NCBI GenBank assembly: GCA_964057225.1
Contig: OZ059899.1
Coordinates: 12,896,001 to 12,960,000, forward strand
Length of the DNA: 64,000 nucleotides
DNA from: Auanema rhodensis
Taxonomy: Eukaryota > Animalia > Nematoda
Direction of reading: 5' to 3'
In this document: in pieces, positions 4,982 through 37,027 of the stretch
Layout of the letters: every line of letters starts with the position of its first letter
Position numbering within the stretch: position 1 is the stretch's first letter
Translations under genes and position numbers: made by a program
Notes under the pieces: model-generated
What the model was told of the DNA's origin: nothing
Seen by the model: the letters and a program-made list of their open reading frames with translations, nothing else
The model's database searches: none

Positions 4982-7900
4982 TTATAATCCAGCGCAGTTA
5001 ATATGACTAGGATAATTGAAGACTTCAAAATCCAAATTCAATCGTTCTCGACGTTCTGTTCGTAAATATCCGACTGATATGCTGGTGTTGTAAGCACGTA
5101 CGGCTTCGGCTCCGCATTTATTCAGCAGCCTCCGAATGGTACACAATCGCATCTGAAATATACATGAATTAGCTCATTTTCTTGAAACTCAACTTCAATT
5201 TCAATGGAAGAGGCGTATGATTTGAAATATGGCGAGAGTGAGAAAAGAGGCGTTTTTTTTGAATATTGATCCGTATATACATTATATAAGGAAAATGGAT
5301 GAAAATATGAAAGAAAAAGTCTATTTGATGAGCCTTTTACCGCCTTTCTTAAGTGAACTCTGGAGCTAGCTGGCATACAAAAAACGATTGTGAGATTACA
5401 TTTCAAAAATGGAGAATGAGCGGAAAAAAGAAAATGTTGAAATGATTGAATACATGAAGCTGCAGGATTTTCTTGTGATTTTCTAAAATTAGATTTGGTT
5501 GTAGTGAATAATTAGCACATAGGCGGAAGGGATATCAATGAAAACGCGTTATGGACTCCAGTAAAACAAAGTAGAATAGGAAAATCATTTGTCAAGCAGT
5601 GTCGATCTATTTCTTCTTCTTTTCTCTATCTGCTCTTCTACTGCTGGCTGATGTGGCTGACCACATCGGGCCATCCAACAATCCAACACATCAAGTATTC
5701 TTTTGAAGCAGTGCTCTATTGCCGTTGCAAAGGATTGTTTTTGTCCTAAGGGAATGGTAAAAGGAATAACACATATGAGAAATGGGTGAAATAAGCATAG
5801 AACAAGTTAAAGGAAGAAAGAGGAAGAAGAAATATATAAAATGCTCTCATGGCTTTTTCCCAAACATCACTTGCACGAAAAGTTTAGTTGTTAGTACTGC
5901 TCAGAGAGAAAGAGTAACAGAACGAGAGACAGAGGGAAGAAGGTATGGAATAAGTTCAAAGTTCTGCAGGAAAATAGGCAAAAAAAGGAAGCAATTCCCA
6001 TTCCAATTTCTAAATTTTCTTCATTTTAATTAACGAATTTCTTTGTTGAATCTTCTCCTTTTGAATCTATTTGTCTGACTCTCTTCCATGTTTCATTGGT
6101 TCAAATACATACATCCTGCATGAAACAGCATGTCCAGCTCCTTTTCTCTTTTACTTTCGGTCTGTCTAGACCGATTTAATTTTACAAACAGAATGGAATT
6201 TTCAAAAAATCAATATCCCTAGCTAGAGCTAATGGTCGAGCTAAAAGGCTCGTTTTTAATTAGCATAGGTAATTCGGTCAACTAACCCCAACAGGAAAAC
6301 GGTCGCTTTCTATTTTTCAGGCCATGGAGGGAAAAGTAAGCAAAAAAAAATTTAAAAAGCACATGACATGTGCCTTTGAGAGATTCTGTGAGAACGGAAA
6401 ATGGAGATTGAGTGCAAGAGAGCAAGAGGGGGATAGAGAGAAAGAGAAGGAAAGAGAATGAGCAAAAAACGGGAAAGAGGAAGAAATACATAGAGGAGCA
6501 GATTCCATAAATCATGAAACATGCATCAGCTTCTTCGACTTCTTCTATGTGGTGGCAATAGCCATTTTTCCTTAATAGGAAGTATCTTTGGGCCCATCTT
6601 CAAGCATCCAAAGATCTGCATTTGTATGGAACCATTGACAAACGATAAATTTATTTTTGGCCCTCAATGCTGCATATAGAGCAACAAAATTTTTTATTTT
6701 TGGCATAAACAGAATAATTTGAAGAAGAGGTCAATGAAATAGTGAATTAAAAATCAGTTTAAATAAAAATTGTAGACTAACCGTTTTGAATTTTCCACAT
6801 TTCACGCCTTCCAATTGGGTAATTTGTTTCATTGTTCGATGGAATAGAGGCCTTCCGGAGCTTTTTTCATCTCTTCAAAATCAATACAATAAAAATAGTT
6901 GTTAAACAAAGAAAACATGCTGATAAGATAATTCTGAAACTTACTCTGGTAATCGCTTAATTGTTTGAACAGCATTATCATAGATTGTTTCAATTTGCTC
7001 GTTTATACGCTCTCGAGTAGTGAAATATGAATTTACGAGCTGAAAATATTTTGAATTATCTTGAACTTTCAACTCATCTAATGAAAAGCATGTTTTAATT
7101 AAAAAATATTTTAATTGTCTTAATATAGAAAATTAAATATTATATTTTTAAATCCAAAATAAACATATTCAAATTGGACAAGAAAATCATTTTGTTTATT
7201 TTTGATTATACACTAATGCGATGCGGTTGTATTCATGCTCGATATGTTTGCGTCATAATCTTATTATTATTATTAGTATTAATATTAATATTATTATTAT
7301 TATTATTATTACTTAAATTATTAAATATACACATAGTATATATATACATGTTTTTTAACTTATCAAATTCTTATCATATGTCAACATTAAGTTTTTTTCT
7401 ATTTCATAGTTTCTAATCTAATATTAGACTCACGTCTGCACAAGGTGCCATCCATCTGGCTACGTCAGTTCCAATACATGGGTAAACTGTCGTTACATAT
7501 GATGGAGAGCTGCATTCTTTTTCAAACATCAAACTAAAAAAAAATCGTAATGATTAATGATAATGCTCTGCTTATGATCAATGACGTACCGATGATTACC
7601 AATCGTTTTTAGGTCCTCTATCCGTTTTACAGTCATTTCATGACCTTCGAATTCTGATCCACATTCTAGTTGCTTTTCATGTTTTAAACAAGCCTGAAAA
7701 AAAAGTTTTATTTCAAATATTTATTATTATTATTTGCAATTGTAGTCACGTATTTGGAGACACTTTTAAAGAAATACTGGTACTGTCTAGCAGGAATTTA
7801 TAAAAAAAAAACAAATGACGAGGACGATGATGATGATGATCAGTAACAAAGCACCTTATGAGTGATTCGAAAGAATTCACAATTAAAAAAAATTTTTTTT

Positions 7901-8216
7901 AATGATCTTATATATGTACCTGTTGAGAGACTTGTTGCATATGGCTATTAGGCAATGTCATGAAGATGGCTATAAATTGCTTCATTCCAGCTTTTTGCAG
8001 CCACAAAGCGCTTTCTGGATTAGCATTTCTGAAAGAAAATTAAGATAATATAGATTTATAACATTATAATTCTTTCATATGAATAGAATAATTATAATAT
8101 TTTTCTAAAAATAAGTGAGAAAAAAACAAAACCTCACGACAGTTGATTCGATTGCAGTTGTCCAATTCTGATCGATATTGTTACATTTTTCTAGACCATC
8201 CAAATAATAATTACTT
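4982..8216 (-). CDS. Uncharacterised nematode Cys-containing protein (multi-exon; 5' end unresolved, probable extra exon 10354-10487)
   Basis: Seven phase-consistent GT-AG exons: 8216-8133, 8028-7920, 7693-7590, 7533-7434, 7039-6945, 6872-6782, 5152-4982. They read ...ACLKHEKQLECGSEF...KECSSPSYVTTVYPCIGTDVARWMAPCAD...KCGKFKTMRLCTIRRLLNKCGAEAVRAY...HINCAGL*. Confidence 0.7.
7261..7311. repeat. Imperfect (TTA)n repeat in intron
   Basis: Direct inspection. Confidence 0.8.
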
Positions 8217-9742
8217 CTGGAAAAACAAAAAAAAAGAATATTTCATATACTATAATCATATTTTATTCATTTTTCGTATTTTTTTTCGTTTGTAATATAG
8301 AATGATTGGCTTATTAGCTGTGCTTTTGATGTTGTTTCATTTGTTGCCATCGTTTCATTATTCATGAAAAATCTTCATAATTGTTCGCATGATTTCATGC
8401 AAACGACGATGTTGAAGAATACAACATTTCTTTTTAAACTAATGATTCACACAAAAAAAAAGGAAAAGAAAATTGTTTCGGCGTGTTAGGCTTTTGTACC
8501 TGATCACGAGAAATTTTCTCCTTTTCGATTTTTTTGTAAAAATTACAAGGTATCATCCTGTAATTTTTAAAATTAGTGAACCATCATCGTTCGTATTCGT
8601 CACAGTTTTTCGTTTCTAACTACGTCTCATCCAATTCTCCCCTAATTTACTTATTCTGAGTTCTTTCCTTCTAACCGGGCATGCAGCATGCACATATGAC
8701 AGAAGTTAGATCGAAAACTTTTTGCTGTAGCAAATGTTGATGCTAACGAACTCTGCGAGCCATTCGACCATATTAATCAACCGGTTATTCTTCCATCGTT
8801 TAAAATTCCGATAATATGATATGGTTTTGTACTTCTACTAACATCTTTCGATGATTCTTTGATTTATTTTGGTATTTGATTCCATTTTTTCTAAAATTAA
8901 AGAAAAGAAACACATTTAAGCCATGCTTTGGCCAGAACTTGGTAAAGAGAGAATGAGAGAAAAAAAATTATTAAAGCATGAATGTTTCAAACGAAATAGT
9001 TAGAGAGAGTAGAGAAAACAGAGAGGATCAACCTGTAACCATTTTCGTTATTATTACATTTTTTGACAATATAAAAGATCATATGAATGACGTAGTGATT
9101 TCATGATGAACGACACCCTCACCTTCATCACCACCATCATCATCATCATCATCAACGTGGTGGTGAAAGAGTAGTGGTGGCAGTGAAGACGATGTCAACG
9201 ATTTTTAACTATCAAAGTCGCTGCAAACAAACGCAGTAGAAAGAAACGAAACGAAGAAGGAGAAGAGACATCAGCTGGTGGTCGAACGAAGACGAATTAA
9301 CAATGAAGAATTGAAGACATATTACACACCATAAGACAACTCTATCGACTGTTTTTACTAGCGTTTCATTTTTCCATAAATGGAAGATACCTGGCTACTT
9401 TTCGATTCAACACCACAACTAACCCCTTCAATCTCTAACCGCATTACGAACTTTTACTTCATCATATTCATCATCAGCGCATGAAATATACAGTGAAATG
9501 AACAGTTTATATGAGAAATTAGTCTGTTTTTAGCATATAAATACCATTTAAATAGATTTTGATTTTTAAAACTATTCATGAAGAACAGTTTATTAATAAG
9601 TTTTCTCAAAATAGATCAGAGAATACGTCTTATCTCAGAAAAAAAACATTGTCGACATATCTGTTGATCATTCAGATAAAAACATTGTGTATCTGATGTT
9701 TCCGATCTGTTCACCATTGCTTTTTTTATGAAGAAAGGTTGG

Positions 9743-9745
<3 letters not shown>

Positions 9746-9832
<87 letters not shown>
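9746..9832. repeat. Long perfect (AG)n microsatellite
   Basis: About 43 uninterrupted units. Confidence 0.97.
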
Positions 9833-9835
<3 letters not shown>

Positions 9836-11527
9836 GGGGGGCTTCGAAAATAAGACTACGCAAAATTCAAGAGACCAATATATGAACAAAGCTATCCGTG
9901 ATCACTGCTCGGAAAATCATTAAAACTTGAGTAGTCAATTCGAATCTTCGTAAATCAGATTTCTCTCAATAACCACGTGCATAACATCATGATTGTCACG
10001 ATTCTATTATAAATGTTTCTCTTATTCTATTAAGATTTGATAAATTTCTTAATAAGATAATTACATATGACATAATTATTTTCAACAAAGTAACTTCTGT
10101 CTTATTAAAAAGAGAAAAAAAATTAAATCAAATGATACAGAGGGAGAGAAAGAAGAAAAGAGAGAGAAAGAGAGAGAGAGAGAGAATTTAACAAAATCTT
10201 AAGAAAATGGTTAGTTTCATCGAAAAGGAACATTTTTTGGACATCAATTTCAACTAACTAATTGAACATGAGAGGCAAATTAAAAAATTGAAAAATGAAG
10301 CGAAATGACCGTATATTGAACAAGAAATAGAAAATGAAGAATGAAAATATTACCTGAGCTTTTCATCTTCGACTCCAGCAATCTTACTCATGTATTCATT
10401 TCTAGCTGAAATTAATCGAATTTCTGTTGATTTTTCCATGACTTTCATAAACTTTTTAGCAAATTTTTCACTTTCTACTGAGAAGAAGGAAATATTTGAG
10501 AGAAAAAGAGAATGAGCAGGGTATGAAGAACTAATTTTTGATTCTATATTTAGGTCATTAAAACATATCCACATAGTATTAATAGATAGATATATATATA
10601 TGTATAAGAACAGTTATTATACATTATATTTATTAAAATACAGAAAAATTAATAGAAGATTTAGTTGTTTATGAAGACAAAATATGAGGTCTTCATCTTC
10701 ATTTTCTATAAGTATTGTTGTTAGAATGTTGGATAATCCGTTGAATATCATAAGAAAATGATAGATTATGCATGTATTGAAAAAAGAAAAAGAAGAAGAA
10801 GAAGAGAAAAGAAGAAAAAAACGATTTTTTATGTTTTCAATTGATAATTCAAACATTGAAATCCAAAAATGAAATTAGATTTTGCACAGTTTCTGAACAT
10901 TTTTGTATATTATGTGAATGGTATAGATGAAATAGATATGAATATTCTATAGAAATAAAGTAAAGAATAACTTAGAAAGAATACGAATGATGCTGTAGTT
11001 TGAATCTTCCTAAGCTGTTTCTCTTAACACTTCGATAGATATCCAATAGCATTCACAGAAGATACATAGAACATCATGTACATCTTCTAGTTCTCATCTC
11101 GTTGTTGGACATTTATAGAAACAGTCTTTATAAAGTATGATGATTTCCTTTATATTATTATAGAAAATGATTATAGAAGAATAATAGAGATACTTATTAC
11201 AGATAATAGGTAATAGAGATTAGTGCTTGTGTTTTAGACACTATAGATTTGGTTCAATCTAATGATTCACAGATATCTATTGAGAGAGTAATTATAAGAT
11301 AGAGAGAGAGAGAAAGCAGGATTAACATATAAGTATGAAAGAGGAGGGGAATTAAGATAGCTGATTGAATTTTGCTTGAAATCTGATGATGTGATATGAC
11401 ACAGGAGGCATAAGGTCTCTTTCTCGGTGTCTATTCATACCACTTCAACCATCTCTCACATTTAACCCTGCATTGCTACACTTTTAGATTATATTAATAT
11501 GGAAATATATATATTTTATCCTTCTTG

Positions 11528-11628
<101 letters not shown>

Positions 11629-11903
11629 TTGATTCCTCAATACACCTTCCTCTATATTCCTGCTTTCCCTCACTCTAGACATAACATCACTCTCATCCTC
11701 AAGTTTTCTTCTTCCGTTTATGAAAATCTATCGTGCTCTATCAGCTCCGCCCACCTTGTTGGCCGATGTGACGAGCTTCTATCAGCTGGCTTTCATCAAT
11801 AGCCTTATAGATCCAAGCGGAGCTGGCCGGTGTCGTGCTCAGAATCAGATAGCCCACCACGGCGATCATCATCGTTGGACATCTGTTCTTAATCATTGTC
11901 ATT

Positions 11904-12908
11904 ATGGCTCCGCTCACAGCACCACAGATTCCGATATTATTATCAGCTAATACGTCTCCACTATCGTCAGCAGCTAGCTCTAGATATTCTAAAATGACGA
12001 CAACGACATCAAGTAACGATGGTAGTAGATACTCACAACGTCAAGCAGCGACAACTACTTCGTTGAAGATGGGCACACGAAGAAGTACAGCTACTACAAC
12101 GACGACAACATCAACGACGACCGACTCGATCGCTTCAGATGATCCGCCCACCAAGGTCGTACAACAGATGCACCGCCCCTACAGGACGATTTCCGGTACA
12201 GTCAACCTTTTTTGGAACGCCTCCTTTTTTACCCTATCATACACACACTCTCTCTCTATCTCTTTCCATATGATTATTCATTTATAGTATTCCATCCCCC
12301 CCCCCCACAATACTTTCTTTCCATAATTCTCTGTCTCTCTCTCTTCATAAATGTGGAATCTTTGGACGACGTGTTGTGAATCACACATCACGAACTAAGC
12401 TAAGAACAGACACGAGGGTCAACTGTCTCTCATGTTCAAAAATAATAAAATCGTTCAAAGTTAACTGTTGCTTTCCAGTCATCGTTGGTATATCATATTA
12501 CTCTTTCATTAATAACAATTTCGATTATTTGTCATCATACACTGAAACTGTTCCTGCATTTTCTACAAAATGTCTGTCTTTCCCGAGACTTCTCGATCTA
12601 ACATTTTCCTTTTCCAACACCAAATCTTTTCGTCATCGTTTTCAACCGTTTTTGGTTGAAAATGATTGGAAGGAAAGAGAAAGAATGGATCAAGATTATA
12701 CTCTCTCGTTATATCAAACTGAATATATAGCTGAGAAATAGAAAGACAATGGACTACAGATTCGGAAAGCGAGACAGACGCTGAAATCGAGGGGTTGGGG
12801 GGGGGGGGGGGGAAGGTTGAGAAAAGGGGAATTGATAAAACTGTGAAAACAGGAAAAGGGAAATATGGGTTGTGATTGTTTGTAGTCTAAGAGGGAGAGA
12901 AAATGGTC

Positions 12909-12953
<45 letters not shown>

Positions 12954-15900
12954 GGAGAGAGAGAGAAACCGAAAAAAATACAAGAGAAAGGTAGAGAGAG
13001 AAGTAGAGGGAAAAGCAAAACAGAACGACAGCATAATGTATAAGTTCAAATCAGAATATATTCATTGAAATGAATAAGAAAAGTTCAAAAATGAATTCTA
13101 AAATGTTTTTATCTAATTCTCATATTTATTATAAAATTTATGTTGCATATGTTGATGAATGTTTCATTTTGAGTTGGAAAAATAAGTCAGATCTTCAAGT
13201 AAAACGGTGTGTATTCGCAGAATTTTTTTCGCTATGATGACACGGAGTTTGGCTGATTGATTAATATCTTCTTGATGAATATTTCATTTGTTTCCTGCTC
13301 TGCGGGTTGATCCAACTCATGATGATCATCTCTGATCATGGAAGAGGAGATAGTGGTATATGTCATTTTGTCTCATTTCCACCTCCCACCCTCTCTTCCT
13401 CTTATATCCTCTACGACCACACTTTGACATTATTTAGTATGCTTTCTCTTACCTCTACTCAACCCGAACATGTTAAGCTCACCTCTACTCTGAATGTCTG
13501 TTCTATTCCAGGTTCAGTCTGGCGTGTGTGTCGACTTCCTCACCTAGTGGTTGCTCCGGACGAGGGTCCCCTAATTCTTCAACCATCTAGTATGCCGTCA
13601 GTTTCATTAGCAACTGTACTGGATAAGCCGATGATACTCTCGCCAACTAGTACAGCTAATGTTCCTGTTTGCAATATTGCTGTGGATCCACGTCTCTACA
13701 AAGGAAGCATCTTCGCAGCTCGCCGTCAAGCAGCGGAAACGGCTCGCAAATTTGAGCAAGAGCAACAGGCTGAATCCAGGTATAGGTTAGTGCCATGCCT
13801 TATTTGTTTACATTTTTTTCTTAAATATAAATACGTTGCTTTTAAAAGTATTTTAAGACATTCTAATTGAAGAAAACATTTTTTTTTGGTAGAATCAGAT
13901 ATAATTTTAGAATTAAAAACCTGAAATTTCTCGTAATTAATCAAATGATTCATTAGTTTTCATTCAAAAATGACTCTAATGTGCACTTTTCCAGAGTTGA
14001 TGTAATTCGAAGTCGATTGGAACAATCACTTCCCCAACTCAATTTAGCTCACCAGCATCAAGCTCCTCATCAAGTTCCTTCGCCTGCACGTTGCTCGCGA
14101 TATCCGAAATGCTACACAACAAACACAACTTCTTCCATAAATATAGGAGTTAATTCAAAAGCTCCGATATGTGCTCGGCGATCATTTTTGCCACCAGCTG
14201 TATCCATAGATAAAGGAATCCGTGTTCGTCATCTTCCACAACTTAAACGAATAGGTTGGTGCTTTACAATGCTCGGCAACTAAGCTGCTGGTTTCATCAA
14301 AACATTATCTTGTTATTCTCTTGTTATTTTCTTTTGTTATGTAGATGTATGCATATCACTTGTTGACAAATGATATCATGCTTCAGCTCTTTGATTAAGC
14401 TTCTTTTCATTATGATATTCCAAACTTTCCATTTTCTTGCTCCATTTTTAGAAAGTTTGTATACAAATCCTTGAAACCATAAAATTGGTTTTTTTTTTTG
14501 AAAAAAAAAATGAAAAGAAAACTCTGAAATCCCAAGAAAACTTTTATTTTGTTTCAAAACAACTTGTATAAAAGGTCTTCTTCTACCAAATTATGGAGAC
14601 GGCCCGAAAAGCAGGTCGGTTAACTAGTATCCTAAAGCTTATTAAATATTTCCGACTCAAAGCTTTCCGGCTTATTTCCGTTTCACCTAATGTTCATATA
14701 CGGCTTCTATTATGAGATCTCTCTTTCTCTCTTTCACTCACTCTCTCTCTATATATATTTCCCTCTCTATAGGTAGCAAAGACAGGATAAAATTTAAGGA
14801 AGATGAAGAAGAATATTTGAAAATATTCATGTTTAGTAATCACGCAATGCCCTCCCTTCAGCAAAGTTTTCTACCTGCCCATATTCAACTTTCAAGTTTT
14901 TTGCTGATAAAAACTGAGAGCACGTGGAGAATACGCAATAAAGTATAAAAAATATATTATTTCTATTTTGCATGAATACTTTAGTAAAATTCTAAAAATT
15001 GTTAGGAAAAAGAAAAAAAAAAGAATCGGAATATATTTTCAAAGAAAAAAATTAGAAACAAAAACATTTATTAAGAAAAAATGATAAGATCATTCCAAGT
15101 GTAATAGCCATATGTACGTCAATTGGACGAGAAAATTAGTTGTTTCTATGGTTTCAGATCAGAATTAACTATAATTATTTTTTTCTTTCAGAAAGTAATC
15201 GTTCGAAGCATGTTCGAATTCGTGATTCACCTCCATCAGTCTTACCAACTCCTCCTCCGTCAGCTCGGATACAGTACCTGATTGTTGACACATCAGTTCA
15301 AACCGATGATGTGAGTTCAATTTGTTTATGATAATGTGGTTATACCTCAGCATGCTGATAGCTGAGAATGATGTAGCAAAACAGAATCTAAATTTCTCTT
15401 TAAATGAAAGAAAGACCATCACTAATATAGCTTTTCGTAGGTTCACAGCTCATATATCTTTGAGTTCTTCTTCACTTTATCATATTTCTATCATTTTTAC
15501 GGATATTAGAAGCTCTTTATCAATATCCGGATCTGTTTCGCTGATAGATTTTCTTTTTAGTTTCTCAGTAGTCCTTGCAATAAGGAAATCAAGCATATTC
15601 CCTATTAGCAGAGGGCCACATCCAATATGAGCATGTGAAGCACCACTTTATTAGATAAACGTTTTTTATTTAACGACCAAAAACTTGCTCTTTTTATCAT
15701 TTCTGTCATATTTAAGCTGAAACTTCCTTAAACATCAGCTGATTCTTCATATTTTTCAATTCTATAAACAACTTTTTCACAATGCACTACTTTTAAAATG
15801 TCAGAAATCAACTAATTTAGTTCGATATATGTTGAAGTCTGACGTAAAACTGATAAAGCATGGAGTCTAAAATTGCTATTCATAATATGATGTCAAATAT

Positions 15901-16782
15901 ATTTTTAGACCTTCGAAGTCGAAGCTTGTTTGCTTGCCCGAAAATTGGCGTCATCTGCTATTCTCCAGGCTATCGAGAACTTACATTACGAGAATAGGGT
16001 TTTAGGTTTGTTGATATCTTCTGTTTTTAAATTTTCCAGTTTAGTAAATGAAAAATATGCTTTGAACGTAAGATATTTTAAAAATTTGCTTGTTCAGAAT
16101 TAAAAATTAAAGCTGAAGACGCTATGATTCTGCTGGAAAATGAAAGGCTAAACAAATCAGAAAATGAAAGGAAATTGGAAGAGAAACTCATAGCAAAGGT
16201 TTCACTTCTTCATAACAGAACAACGTTTTTATCTACATTTTCTAGGAGCAAGAATTGGAAGCTTGTGCCAAGCGGAGTGAACAAGTTATTCTTAGTAAGG
16301 AATTGGCTGTTAAAACATGTAAAGAGGTAATGACCTCATGATTGCTTTGGTTTCAATCTATTCCAAGTTCAGGTTACAAATTCGTCGCTATCGAAGGTAG
16401 AAAAGCTAGAGAAAATGAATCCCAAGACGAAATCAGTCGGCATCGAAACTCGTCAAATGAATAGAACTCAACGAAAAATTGATTTAATGACTATAGGTAA
16501 TATTTGTGGTATCCCTATCAATCATATTCAACAACTTGTAGAGCTTGAAAAAGATTTCTTCCCTTGGCTATTTGCTCAAGCAGATGAAATATGTAGACAA
16601 CAATTAGCCATTACTGGATTAGAAAACGGTACGATTTTCTTTATATAATAGAAAGTATTAAATACTTCGTACCAACTTTAAATCCTTTTTTTGATATAAT
16701 TAATCTTTTTTTTTCAGCCGCATCCAAGAAAGAGTATACGAGACGGAAGCGTAAATCCTATTCAAATGTAAAATCATACTAA
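11904..16782 (+). CDS. Divergent radial spoke protein 3 (RSPH3)-like / putative AKAP, about 510 aa
   Basis: Nine phase-consistent exons: 11904-12195, 13512-13779, 13995-14254, 15192-15310, 15909-16005, 16098-16198, 16246-16326, 16373-16628, 16718-16782. Colinear RSP3-like motifs: CNIAVDPRLYKGSIFA, PTPPP..SVQTD, FEVEACLLARKLASSAILQAIE, a coiled coil, ELEKDFFPWLFAQAD. The gene structure is solid; the family call is by eye. Confidence 0.65.
12797..12812 (+). repeat. G16 homopolymer (G-quadruplex-capable)
   Basis: Direct inspection, preceded by GGGGTT. Confidence 0.9.
12914..12966. repeat. (AG)n microsatellite
   Basis: Direct inspection. Confidence 0.9.
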
Positions 16783-17154
16783 ACTATAGTGATTTTGTTG
16801 TGATTTCACATTGGTTACGGGTACCCACAATGTTCGAACAAATAATAAAATATTATTATTATTATTATTATTTTACAATAATATGTAAACATGACAGCAG
16901 CAGCACTGCTTTACATACTTAAAATATTCTAATCTCACGTGTGACGTATGACGTGTTGTATATGTATATAATGCCTTCATTTACAATTTTCATTAAACAG
17001 AGAGGTTTTGCATTTGAGCACATTTCATTTAAGAAATTATTATTATTTTAAATAGCTTTCACAAGATAAATGTATTTTTATTTTCAAATAATTATTACAG
17101 ATAGTCTTCATAAAAAAAAGGTTAAATGAAGAATTACATTGGTGAACTCATGTA

Positions 17155-35130: not shown

Positions 35131-37027
<1,897 letters not shown>

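Follow-up and report, generated by a model that had tools for sequence, protein, structure and literature searches.

In the present study a window of 64,000 nucleotides from Auanema rhodensis (OZ059899.1) was analysed, and all coordinates given here are positions within it. The window carries a plus-strand gene which is probably (with a probability of roughly 0.6) a strongly diverged member of the RSP3/RSPH3 lineage, one that has outlived the radial spoke and would serve as a scaffold outside any spoke. Radial-spoke genes are textbook losses alongside the loss of ciliary motility, and nematodes, in which these genes are reported lost and which have neither motile cilia nor flagellate sperm, are the reference case (PMC5850483). 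The nematode source named in the original prediction was borne out by the SL1 leader, the 22-mer of which has 3,451 copies in the genome against 0 for a reversed-pattern control. In the predicted protein the order of RSP3 elements appears to be kept, namely a NI..D.R.Y.G..(Y/F)A motif, a disordered Ser-Pro/Thr-Pro stretch, VQT, an amphipathic helix, a helix of about 100 residues and FFPWL.

Gene structure and expression

The gene is transcribed, correctly spliced and single-copy (genome search), and is a real nematode gene. The corrected model has 10 exons encoding 499 aa on the plus strand, as listed below.

Exon 1 (proposed), 11904..12195, plus strand: Ser/Thr-rich N-terminus from MAPLTAP... 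to ...RTIS; donor G|GTACAG, phase 1.
Exon 2, 13512..13785, plus strand: conserved SVWRVCRLPHLVVAPDEGPL block; RSP3-type N-terminal motif CNIAVDPRLYKGSIFAARRQAAE at 13670-13738.
Exon 3, 13995..14254, plus strand: helix end and predicted disordered region; conserved block RRSFLPPAVSIDKG.
Exon 4, 15192..15310, plus strand: Ser-Pro/Thr-Pro sites (DSPPSVLPTPPPS) and SVQTD at 15293-15307; RNA joints on both sides.
Exon 5, 15909..16005, plus strand: predicted AKAP-type amphipathic helix TFEVEACLLARKLASSAILQAIENL (15909-15983), with which the long helix begins; RNA joints.
Exon 6, 16098..16198, plus strand: E/K-rich long helix; joints in three to four RNA runs.
Exon 7, 16246..16326, plus strand: continuation of the long helix; RNA joints; conserved in the Auanema sp. 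JU1783 locus.
Exon 8, 16373..16496, plus strand: end of the long helix and linker, last residues ...KIDLMTI; joint 16496->16542 in three runs.
Exon 9, 16542..16628, plus strand: C-terminal RSP3-type block (E)LEKDFFPWLFAQADEICRQQLA; RNA joints.
Exon 10, 16718..16782, plus strand: basic tail and TAA stop (16780-16782); joint 16628->16718 in four runs.

The nine exons originally described as a clean reading frame do form a single open frame of 512 aa through GT..AG introns, and six of their eight introns (14255-15191, 15311-15908, 16006-16097, 16199-16245, 16327-16372 and 16629-16717) match the RNA exactly; the model was otherwise amended at one donor and by a tenth exon. One RNA contig places the exon-2 donor at 13785|13786, 6 nt downstream of the first model (13779), which adds two residues in agreement with ...KYRVDV... 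of the ortholog. Further, a 45-nt in-frame intron (16497-16541), which the first model had translated as coding sequence, was found to be spliced out in three RNA runs and is missing from the ortholog P0001; the 15 residues GNICGIPINHIQQLV are therefore absent from the protein. In the contigs of the four RNA runs (X1-X4) GT..AG introns are missing, which shows that the contigs originate from spliced RNA. They contain eight GT..AG joints of the gene, including 13785->13995 (one run) and 14254->15192 (four runs) on either side of exon 3, and extend past the stop into a 3' UTR reaching 16817-16824. RNA depth was 3-6 for the gene against 20-40 for its antisense neighbour, depth being a poor measure here.

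The joining of exons in RNA thus spans exons 2-10, but the junction 12195->13512 was not found in the contigs of the four runs, and in two runs the exon-2 contigs have their first base right at the acceptor (13511 and 13512). The 78 nt of exon 2 before its first Met show 11 differences from the ortholog, 8 of them at wobble positions and only 2 changing a residue, and seven of the nine differing codons among the first 26 are synonymous. This synonymous bias indicates that the stretch is coding, and the start codon must therefore sit in an upstream exon. The proposed exon 1 offers candidate start codons at 11904, 12168 or another in-frame ATG, and its ORF, ATG context, donor and first intron bases are kept in Auanema sp. 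JU1783 (L005:9749-10010), where 51 of 85 aligned residues are identical. Wobble analysis of exon 1 gave a weak bias (17/18/29 mismatches by codon position), which alone cannot assign the coding strand because the wobble position of the plus frame coincides with that of one minus frame. A more abundant minus-strand transcript covers 11800-12135, and with it the greater part of exon 1 (11904-12135), and has its own intron at 11989-12036, and a Pfam search with the conserved exons of this neighbour found no family. The annotation of P0001 starts (MISVG...) at an ATG placed 10 nt upstream of the donor of exon 1 and omits the conserved upstream ORF MAPLTAP...; the same JU1783 annotation lets the coding sequence of the minus-strand neighbour begin inside the omitted stretch (locus position 9963). 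A scan for X-boxes gave matches at chance level and none near the gene start, in agreement with the earlier remark that no clean X-box is present there.

Ortholog and selection

The sole detectable ortholog is P0001 of Auanema sp. JU1783 (GCA_943334845.2), which shares 65% identity with the window protein over 357 residues. At its locus the introns that were checked sit at matching positions, and the same minus-strand gene lies head to head with it. It is entered as an unnamed protein product with no Pfam domain, so the expectation that no nematode ortholog was already labelled RSPH3-like held for this only database copy. In the genome search, exon 2 was 67% identical to residues 5-97 of P0001 and exon 4 was 72% identical to residues 171-216 (82% in a MAFFT exon alignment, which misplaced short exons); exon 3 was found conserved in the JU1783 locus by tblastn. 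Mismatches in exon 2 fall 16/12/41 by codon position, against 27/31/24 in an intron control, and the gene is under purifying selection. A word-seeded search with P0001 (E of 10 or below) returned P0001 alone. Exhaustive phmmer with exon 2 gave, beyond P0001, two matches to repeat proteins that were judged spurious. As a homolog is detectable in one other species only, descent from RSP3 would require many losses, or failed detection, elsewhere.

Relationship to RSP3

Kinship with RSP3 is supported by converging evidence from sequence comparison, at scores below curated thresholds. When P0001 was searched with phmmer against 177,635 PDB sequences, the top two matches were the RSP3 chains 9y6s_8u and 9e5c_2i (E 0.02 and 0.31), both titled 'Radial spoke protein 3, putative'. 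The N- and C-terminal motifs follow one another there as they do in P0001; coiled-coil composition inflates these local scores, with a bias of 13-15 bits. The N-terminal piece of P0001 alone again placed RSP3 first (E 1.3), part of this score being due to residues that differ in the window protein. With the C-terminal piece alone, the two RSP3 chains took the top two ranks (E 0.21 and 0.8). Through P0001, the exon-2 motif CNIAVDPRLYKGSIFAARRQAAE aligns to NIMYDRRVYRGNTYA of chain 9y6s_8u, and the P0001 counterpart of exon 9 is matched by EVELDFFPWLMTEVD and EVEFDFFPWLMDQV in two RSP3 chains of the PDB.

The same C-terminal piece had Radial_spoke_3 (PF06098) as its best Pfam family, the counterpart of exon 9 matching profile positions 174-218 of 229 (E 0.01, 15.7 bits). 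Comparison with this Pfam model, which the original prediction had put forward as a check, stayed below the cut-off: full-length P0001 had no Pfam match at E of 10 or below, the segment P0001:180-388 scored 9.4 bits against PF06098, and the best score of 15.7 bits lies below the gathering score of 26.4 bits, so that membership of the family is not reached. In the ESM Atlas feature comparison, the three best clusters for P0001 consist to 95-100% of PF06098 members (score 0.93-0.94, 203-204 of 256 features), and the ten best matches that have a family all belong to one family or clan; with PF06098 skipped, no named family was left. The structure neighbours of P0001 in the same resource are generic coiled coils.

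The window's own exons were less informative. Searched singly against Pfam they gave no match besides a chance Mucin match on exon 1, and exon 2 alone had no usable match in the ESM Atlas. By phmmer against the PDB (E of 10 or below), exon 2, the unspliced exon 8, a 48-aa piece with the N-terminal motif and the 28-aa FFPWL exon did not return RSP3; these short pieces match other proteins instead. Since pieces of the window protein never recover RSP3, the case for kinship rests on the ortholog P0001. A profile built from P0001 and four window exons placed RSP3 third in the PDB (E 0.96), with coiled-coil noise on top. A six-frame search of the whole genome with PF06098 found no match and is uninformative, as its control matched nowhere either. 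Foldseek with the AF2 model of P0001 found no match in the PDB, a null that carries no information because the model is half-disordered and single-helix. The middle piece P0001:180-262 had no match in the PDB or in Pfam. The proposed RSP3-like motif order is thus upheld by alignment of the ortholog for its N- and C-terminal motifs, while the middle motifs have no scored match. Likewise, the description of an RSP3-like gene in a nematode finds agreement in the PDB, Pfam and language-model matches of P0001, but all of these stay below curated thresholds and the window pieces miss RSP3.

Predicted architecture and docking motifs

The AF2 model of P0001 shows a disordered N-terminal half, with low confidence over residues 113-211, followed by a long helix of about 108 residues (212-319, pLDDT > 90) which begins at the amphipathic helix; this layout is shared with RSP3 (PMC3494852, PMC3392930). 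Each of the two proteins contains one conserved [TIVSC]Q[TIVSC] motif, SVQT(D/E), located 8 residues upstream of the amphipathic helix. Lying in the segment of low AF2 confidence before the helix, it is a candidate LC8 motif placed as an LC8-type site would be. In RSP3 itself, LC8 motifs of the TQT-like kind lie in the disordered N-terminal region, the last of them next to the amphipathic helix, and TP sites are found close by (PMC3392930); its N-terminal region of about 80 residues docks the Chlamydomonas protein to the axoneme (PMC3494852).

The amphipathic helix was compared with AKAP-IS, the sequence of which is printed in PMC4526808 and PMC11408856. The P0001 helix gave a local score of 43, a value reached by 0 of 2000 shuffles (20.9 +/- 3.1), whereas the window protein scored 29, which was reached by 43 of 2000 shuffles. 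Against the AKAP-IS core LAKQIVDNAIQQA, the P0001 helix LAKQLVSTAILQA is identical at 9 of 13 positions and the window helix LARKLASSAILQA at 6 of 13. Both share the hydrophobic spacing of canonical AKAP helices, as predicted from sequence only, and the helices of both species fit an AKAP signature pattern. The nematode PKA regulatory subunit (KIN-2) is of the RI type, and AKAP-IS prefers RII. In the radial spoke, the amphipathic helix binds RIIa proteins other than PKA and can bind Dpy-30 (PMC3494852).

Taken element by element, the window protein appears to share with RSP3 (Chlamydomonas RSP3, human RSPH3), in this order, the N-terminal motif NI..D.R..(R/K)G..(Y/F)A, a disordered region with TP sites, a TQT-like LC8 motif adjoining a predicted AKAP-type helix, the long helix itself and, where the Pfam domain ends, an E.E.DF(F/L)PWL block. 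On the other hand, RSP3 has three to five LC8-type motifs and the window protein has one; the window protein ends shortly after the FFPWL block, unlike RSP3; and for its Ser/Thr-rich N-terminal exon no RSP3 counterpart could be compared. The host of this gene has no motile cilia, and no spoke-head gene was found in the exon-by-exon search of its genome.

The genome search for partners proposed in the original prediction returned docking-domain genes, namely one clear RIIa-domain gene, kin-2, and three Dpy-30-domain loci, but no spoke-head PF04712 gene; neither PF04712 nor DRC4/GAS was found in an exon-by-exon search of the genome that had no eukaryotic positive control. In this genome introns interrupt both the RIIa domain of KIN-2 and the Dpy-30 domains. 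Five LC8-family loci are also present. A second RIIa match (L004) was weak and looks spurious, and a Dpy-30 locus considered as NME5/RSP23-like was set aside, the NDK matches lying elsewhere in the genome.

Since the docking motifs of RSP3 are kept, the protein has probably persisted as an anchoring scaffold in its own right. Recruitment of an LC8 light chain (DLC-1 family) would fall to the VQT motif, and the amphipathic helix may dock the dimerisation/docking domain of KIN-2 or of a Dpy-30-domain protein. The scaffold may itself dimerise, and its cellular site of action would be outside an axonemal spoke. Somewhat short of even odds is the more specific and tentative proposal that in a rhabditid nematode lineage a relic RSP3 has come through the complete loss of motile cilia with only its portable docking modules, an LC8 motif and an AKAP helix carried on its long helix, and now anchors PKA or another docking-domain enzyme, either non-axonemally or in sensory cilia.

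Alternative explanations

An unlikely explanation is that the gene encodes a disordered, coiled-coil protein particular to this lineage, perhaps itself an independent AKAP, whose few short motifs and E/K-rich helix resemble RSP3 by chance or convergence. Every E-value is borderline (0.01 to 1.3), full-length P0001 lacks a Pfam match, the two-species profile weakens the RSP3 match, the window pieces match other proteins, the coiled-coil bias reaches 13-15 bits and the family is known in two species only. However, phmmer against the PDB, the Pfam HMMs and the language-model features all name one and the same family. Moreover, none of the matching motifs falls within the E/K-rich helix; their order is the same and their spacing similar, and they coincide with known functional elements of RSP3, the LC8 motif adjoining the amphipathic helix and the final part of the Pfam domain.

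It is far less probable that the locus is a decaying relic, transcribed but without a selected protein function. The low RNA depth (3-6 vs 20-40, a poor measure here), the fast divergence (65% identity, against mostly 67-91% for conserved exons of the neighbouring gene matched one by one) and the narrow taxonomic range would fit decay, but the frame is intact over 10 exons in two species, canonical splice sites are used at eight joints in RNA, substitutions favour wobble and synonymous changes, and the functional motifs are conserved between the species. Least probable of all is that the protein still works in a radial spoke or axoneme, within some unrecognised motile or 9+2-like structure. 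The N-terminal motif region, where axoneme docking takes place in Chlamydomonas (PMC3494852), is kept; against this, no spoke-head or DRC4/GAS gene, nor any RIIa gene besides kin-2, was found in the exon-by-exon genome searches, nematodes have no motile cilia or flagellate sperm (PMC5850483), and no X-box lies near the gene start.

Implications

If a diverged RSP3 has indeed outlived the spoke in Auanema, RSP3's scaffold module of LC8 motif and AKAP helix would have a spoke-independent function, and the gene would provide a natural minimal RSP3 in which this function can be studied. The label 'lost in nematodes' would then, for at least one spoke gene, partly reflect undetected fast-evolving orthologs. 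More generally, absences in phylogenetic profiles would be able to conceal orthologs that evolve fast and lack a Pfam annotation.

Probable relationship to radial spoke protein 3

A gene resembling RSP3, the scaffold of radial spokes in motile axonemes, was originally predicted in this nematode at window 11904-16782 (+), the window being contig C7:12,896,001-12,960,000. Three methods converge on RSP3 with no competing family, although all of the matches lie below the curated threshold. In the phmmer search of P0001, the ortholog from Auanema sp. JU1783 (GCA_943334845.2), against 177,635 distinct PDB sequences, the top two matches were chains named 'Radial spoke protein 3, putative' (9y6s_8u, E 0.02; 9e5c_2i, E 0.31), where CNISVDPRLYKGSIFA is aligned with GNIMYDRRVYRGNTYA and IELEKDFFPWLFAQAE with EVELDFFPWLMTEVD. 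These motifs sit outside the E/K-rich helix, and the non-overlapping end pieces searched alone gave RSP3 as the top match each time (E 1.3; E 0.21 and 0.8). The predicted motif order is thus retained at both termini through P0001, but the middle region of P0001 found no match in PDB or Pfam. For the C-terminal piece, Radial_spoke_3 (PF06098) was the best of 24,736 Pfam families (E 0.01, profile positions 174-218 of 229), but its 15.7 bits are below the 26.4-bit cut-off for formal membership, and full-length P0001 has no Pfam match. In the protein-language-model comparison, the best three clusters shown were 95-100% PF06098 (score 0.93-0.94, 203-204 of 256 features common) and the ten best family-bearing matches all belonged to one family or clan; on excluding PF06098, no named family was left.

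The exons of the window gene (against Pfam) and short pieces of its protein (against PDB) gave no RSP3 or PF06098 match; a six-frame genome search with PF06098 gave none either, but is uninformative since its control also had no match. The two-species profile of P0001 and the window exons matched RSP3 more weakly than P0001 alone, and Foldseek with the AF2 model of P0001 was uninformative because the model is half-disordered and helical. On the sequence comparisons as a whole, homology of the window gene and P0001 to RSP3 is considered probable (about 0.85).

An exhaustive phmmer search with exon 2 over 1.84 billion cluster representatives recovered one true relative, P0001 (388 aa; 65% identity to the window protein over 357 residues), and word-seeded HMMER with P0001 over 5.8 billion proteins (E<=10) found nothing beyond it. 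The only database copy is an 'unnamed protein product' without domain annotation, and the literature search found no published report of a nematode RSP3. The gene is single copy in its genome, which is that of a nematode since the 181-Mb assembly (G000) holds 3,451 copies of the canonical SL1 leader in tandem arrays, against 0 for the reversed-pattern control. The total of more than 3,400 is high for a nematode; very large arrays with periods of 252 bp and 341 bp occur at G000:C3:6741531-6766485 and from C3:14134320 onward.

Transcript structure and 5' end

The RNA evidence comprises Logan contigs from four runs of one 2019 study, which come from spliced RNA because introns with GT..AG ends are skipped. 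The predicted clean nine-exon ORF does join through GT..AG introns in a 512-aa frame, and six of the eight introns were matched exactly (the exon 1 junction excepted), but the model needs two corrections. The exon-2 donor lies at 13785/13786, adding two residues, and the corrected end reads ...RYRVDV... where P0001 has KYRVDV. An in-frame 45-nt intron (16497-16541), which the ortholog does not have, is removed in three runs, deleting 15 residues kept in the prediction. The corrected gene has 10 exons and 499 aa (375 aa from the first Met within exon 2), and the contigs extend its 3' UTR to 16817-16824. Long (CT)n/(GA)n microsatellites at 11520-11615, 12905-12965 and 9740-9860 flank and interrupt the locus, and drew unrelated high-depth contigs in the read layout. 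Elsewhere, two long exons at 35634-36887 (+) presumably code for the beta subunit of mitochondrial ATP synthase, as recognised by eye from the ORF translations (Walker A GGAGVGKT).

The junction 12195->13512 was absent from the contigs of all four runs, and the first base of the exon-2 contigs coincides with the acceptor (13511 and 13512). Window 11800-12135 lies under contigs of about 1.4 kb and higher depth, which remove a CT..AC interval (11989-12036); as this reads GTGAGT...TTTTAG on the minus strand, the transcript across it is a minus-strand one. It belongs to a neighbouring gene that faces the RSP3-like gene in a head-to-head arrangement, is better represented in the RNA contigs and has these coding blocks:

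Conserved coding blocks of the minus-strand neighbour (approximate positions)
~6758-8218 (-), coding block conserved in Auanema
10353-10409 (-), coding block conserved in Auanema
11744-11902 (-), coding block conserved in Auanema

The neighbour is conserved and syntenic in Auanema, where its product has 361 aa, and it matched no Pfam family. A single base (CAT T ATG) separates its ATG (11902-11900) from the divergently oriented ATG proposed for the plus strand at 11904, and the conserved coding exons of the neighbour extend leftwards to about 6.8 kb, so that most of the proposed exon 1 coincides with the spliced 5' UTR of the neighbour.

Conservation with the Auanema locus extends even to intron-proximal DNA, which, with P0001 as the sole ortholog recovered, places the species near Auanema among the rhabditids. 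That locus also conserves the plus-strand ORF (MAPLTAP... to ...ISG), with 51 of 85 aligned residues identical, together with the ATG context and the donor ATTTCCG/GTACAGTCAAC of this ORF, whereas the competing minus frame is interrupted by stop codons in each of the two species. Mismatches by codon position are 17/18/29 in exon 1 (a weak wobble bias), 16/12/41 in exon 2 and 27/31/24 in the intron. In the 78 nt of exon 2 that precede its first Met, eight of the 11 differing positions are at wobble; seven codons carry synonymous differences, and no more than two residues are altered. This stretch is therefore coding, and a start codon must sit in an upstream exon. We accept the exon-1 donor and the existence of an upstream coding exon, whereas the long Ser/Thr-rich part of exon 1 and the choice of ATG are only probable. 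The Auanema annotation begins the ortholog 10 nt before the donor (MISVG...); at L005:9749-10010 (L005, the genomic locus of P0001) it omits the conserved upstream ORF (MAPLTAPP...) and sets the minus-strand CDS start of the neighbour (locus 9963) within it, probably mis-annotating one of two overlapping genes.

Protein architecture

The AF2 model of P0001 has low confidence at residues 1-63 and 113-211, and helices are predicted at 64-112, 212-319, 326-351 and 353-385. The first part of the long helix is amphipathic and conserved (LLARKLASSAILQA in the window, EITILAKQLVSTAILQA in P0001), and it resembles the AKAP-IS peptide (sequence as printed in PMC4526808): P0001 scores 43 (shuffles 20.9 +/- 3.1, 0/2000 reaching 43), and the window helix 29, a score reached by 43/2000 shuffles. 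Each of the two proteins has a single TQT-like motif, SVQT(D/E), eight residues upstream of the amphipathic helix, and conserved Ser-Pro and Thr-Pro sites come before it. Such a layout has been published for RSP3, where TQT-like LC8-binding motifs occupy the disordered N-terminal region, the last adjoining the RIIa-binding helix (161-178), and Thr-Pro sites for ERK are close by. Beyond them come a dimeric coiled coil and, towards the end of the conserved domain, a second helix, which binds Dpy-30 (PMC3392930, PMC3494852).

Candidate partners and proposed role

As candidate partners, the genome has five LC8-family loci, three Dpy-30-domain loci and one clear RIIa-domain gene, whose product starts MSGGNEEAQLAQCQAYVQRHNIQQLVKEAI and which we take to be KIN-2. 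On C4, about 3 kb separates a paralog of the LC8 family (Dynein_light) from an exon with a Dpy-30 domain (G000:C4:18273936-18274082 and C4:18277029-18277115), and a further Dpy-30-domain gene is at G000:C3:14067246-14067401; either locus may supply a partner of the RSP3-like protein. The search for RSP partners found these RIIa- and Dpy-30-domain loci, but neither spoke-head PF04712 nor DRC4/GAS was detected in an exon-by-exon search of the genome run with no eukaryotic positive control. [quoted passage not shown] As originally noted, the X-box scan found none near the gene start.

The gene is probably a novel and highly divergent form of the known RSP3 family in an unexpected host, with sub-threshold statistics and a two-species range. 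Under the favoured interpretation, a relic RSP3 would serve as an LC8-associated, AKAP-like scaffold outside the spoke; its dimerisation, partner binding and location are presumed. Such a protein is of interest for cilium evolution and for a spoke-independent role of the docking modules of RSP3.
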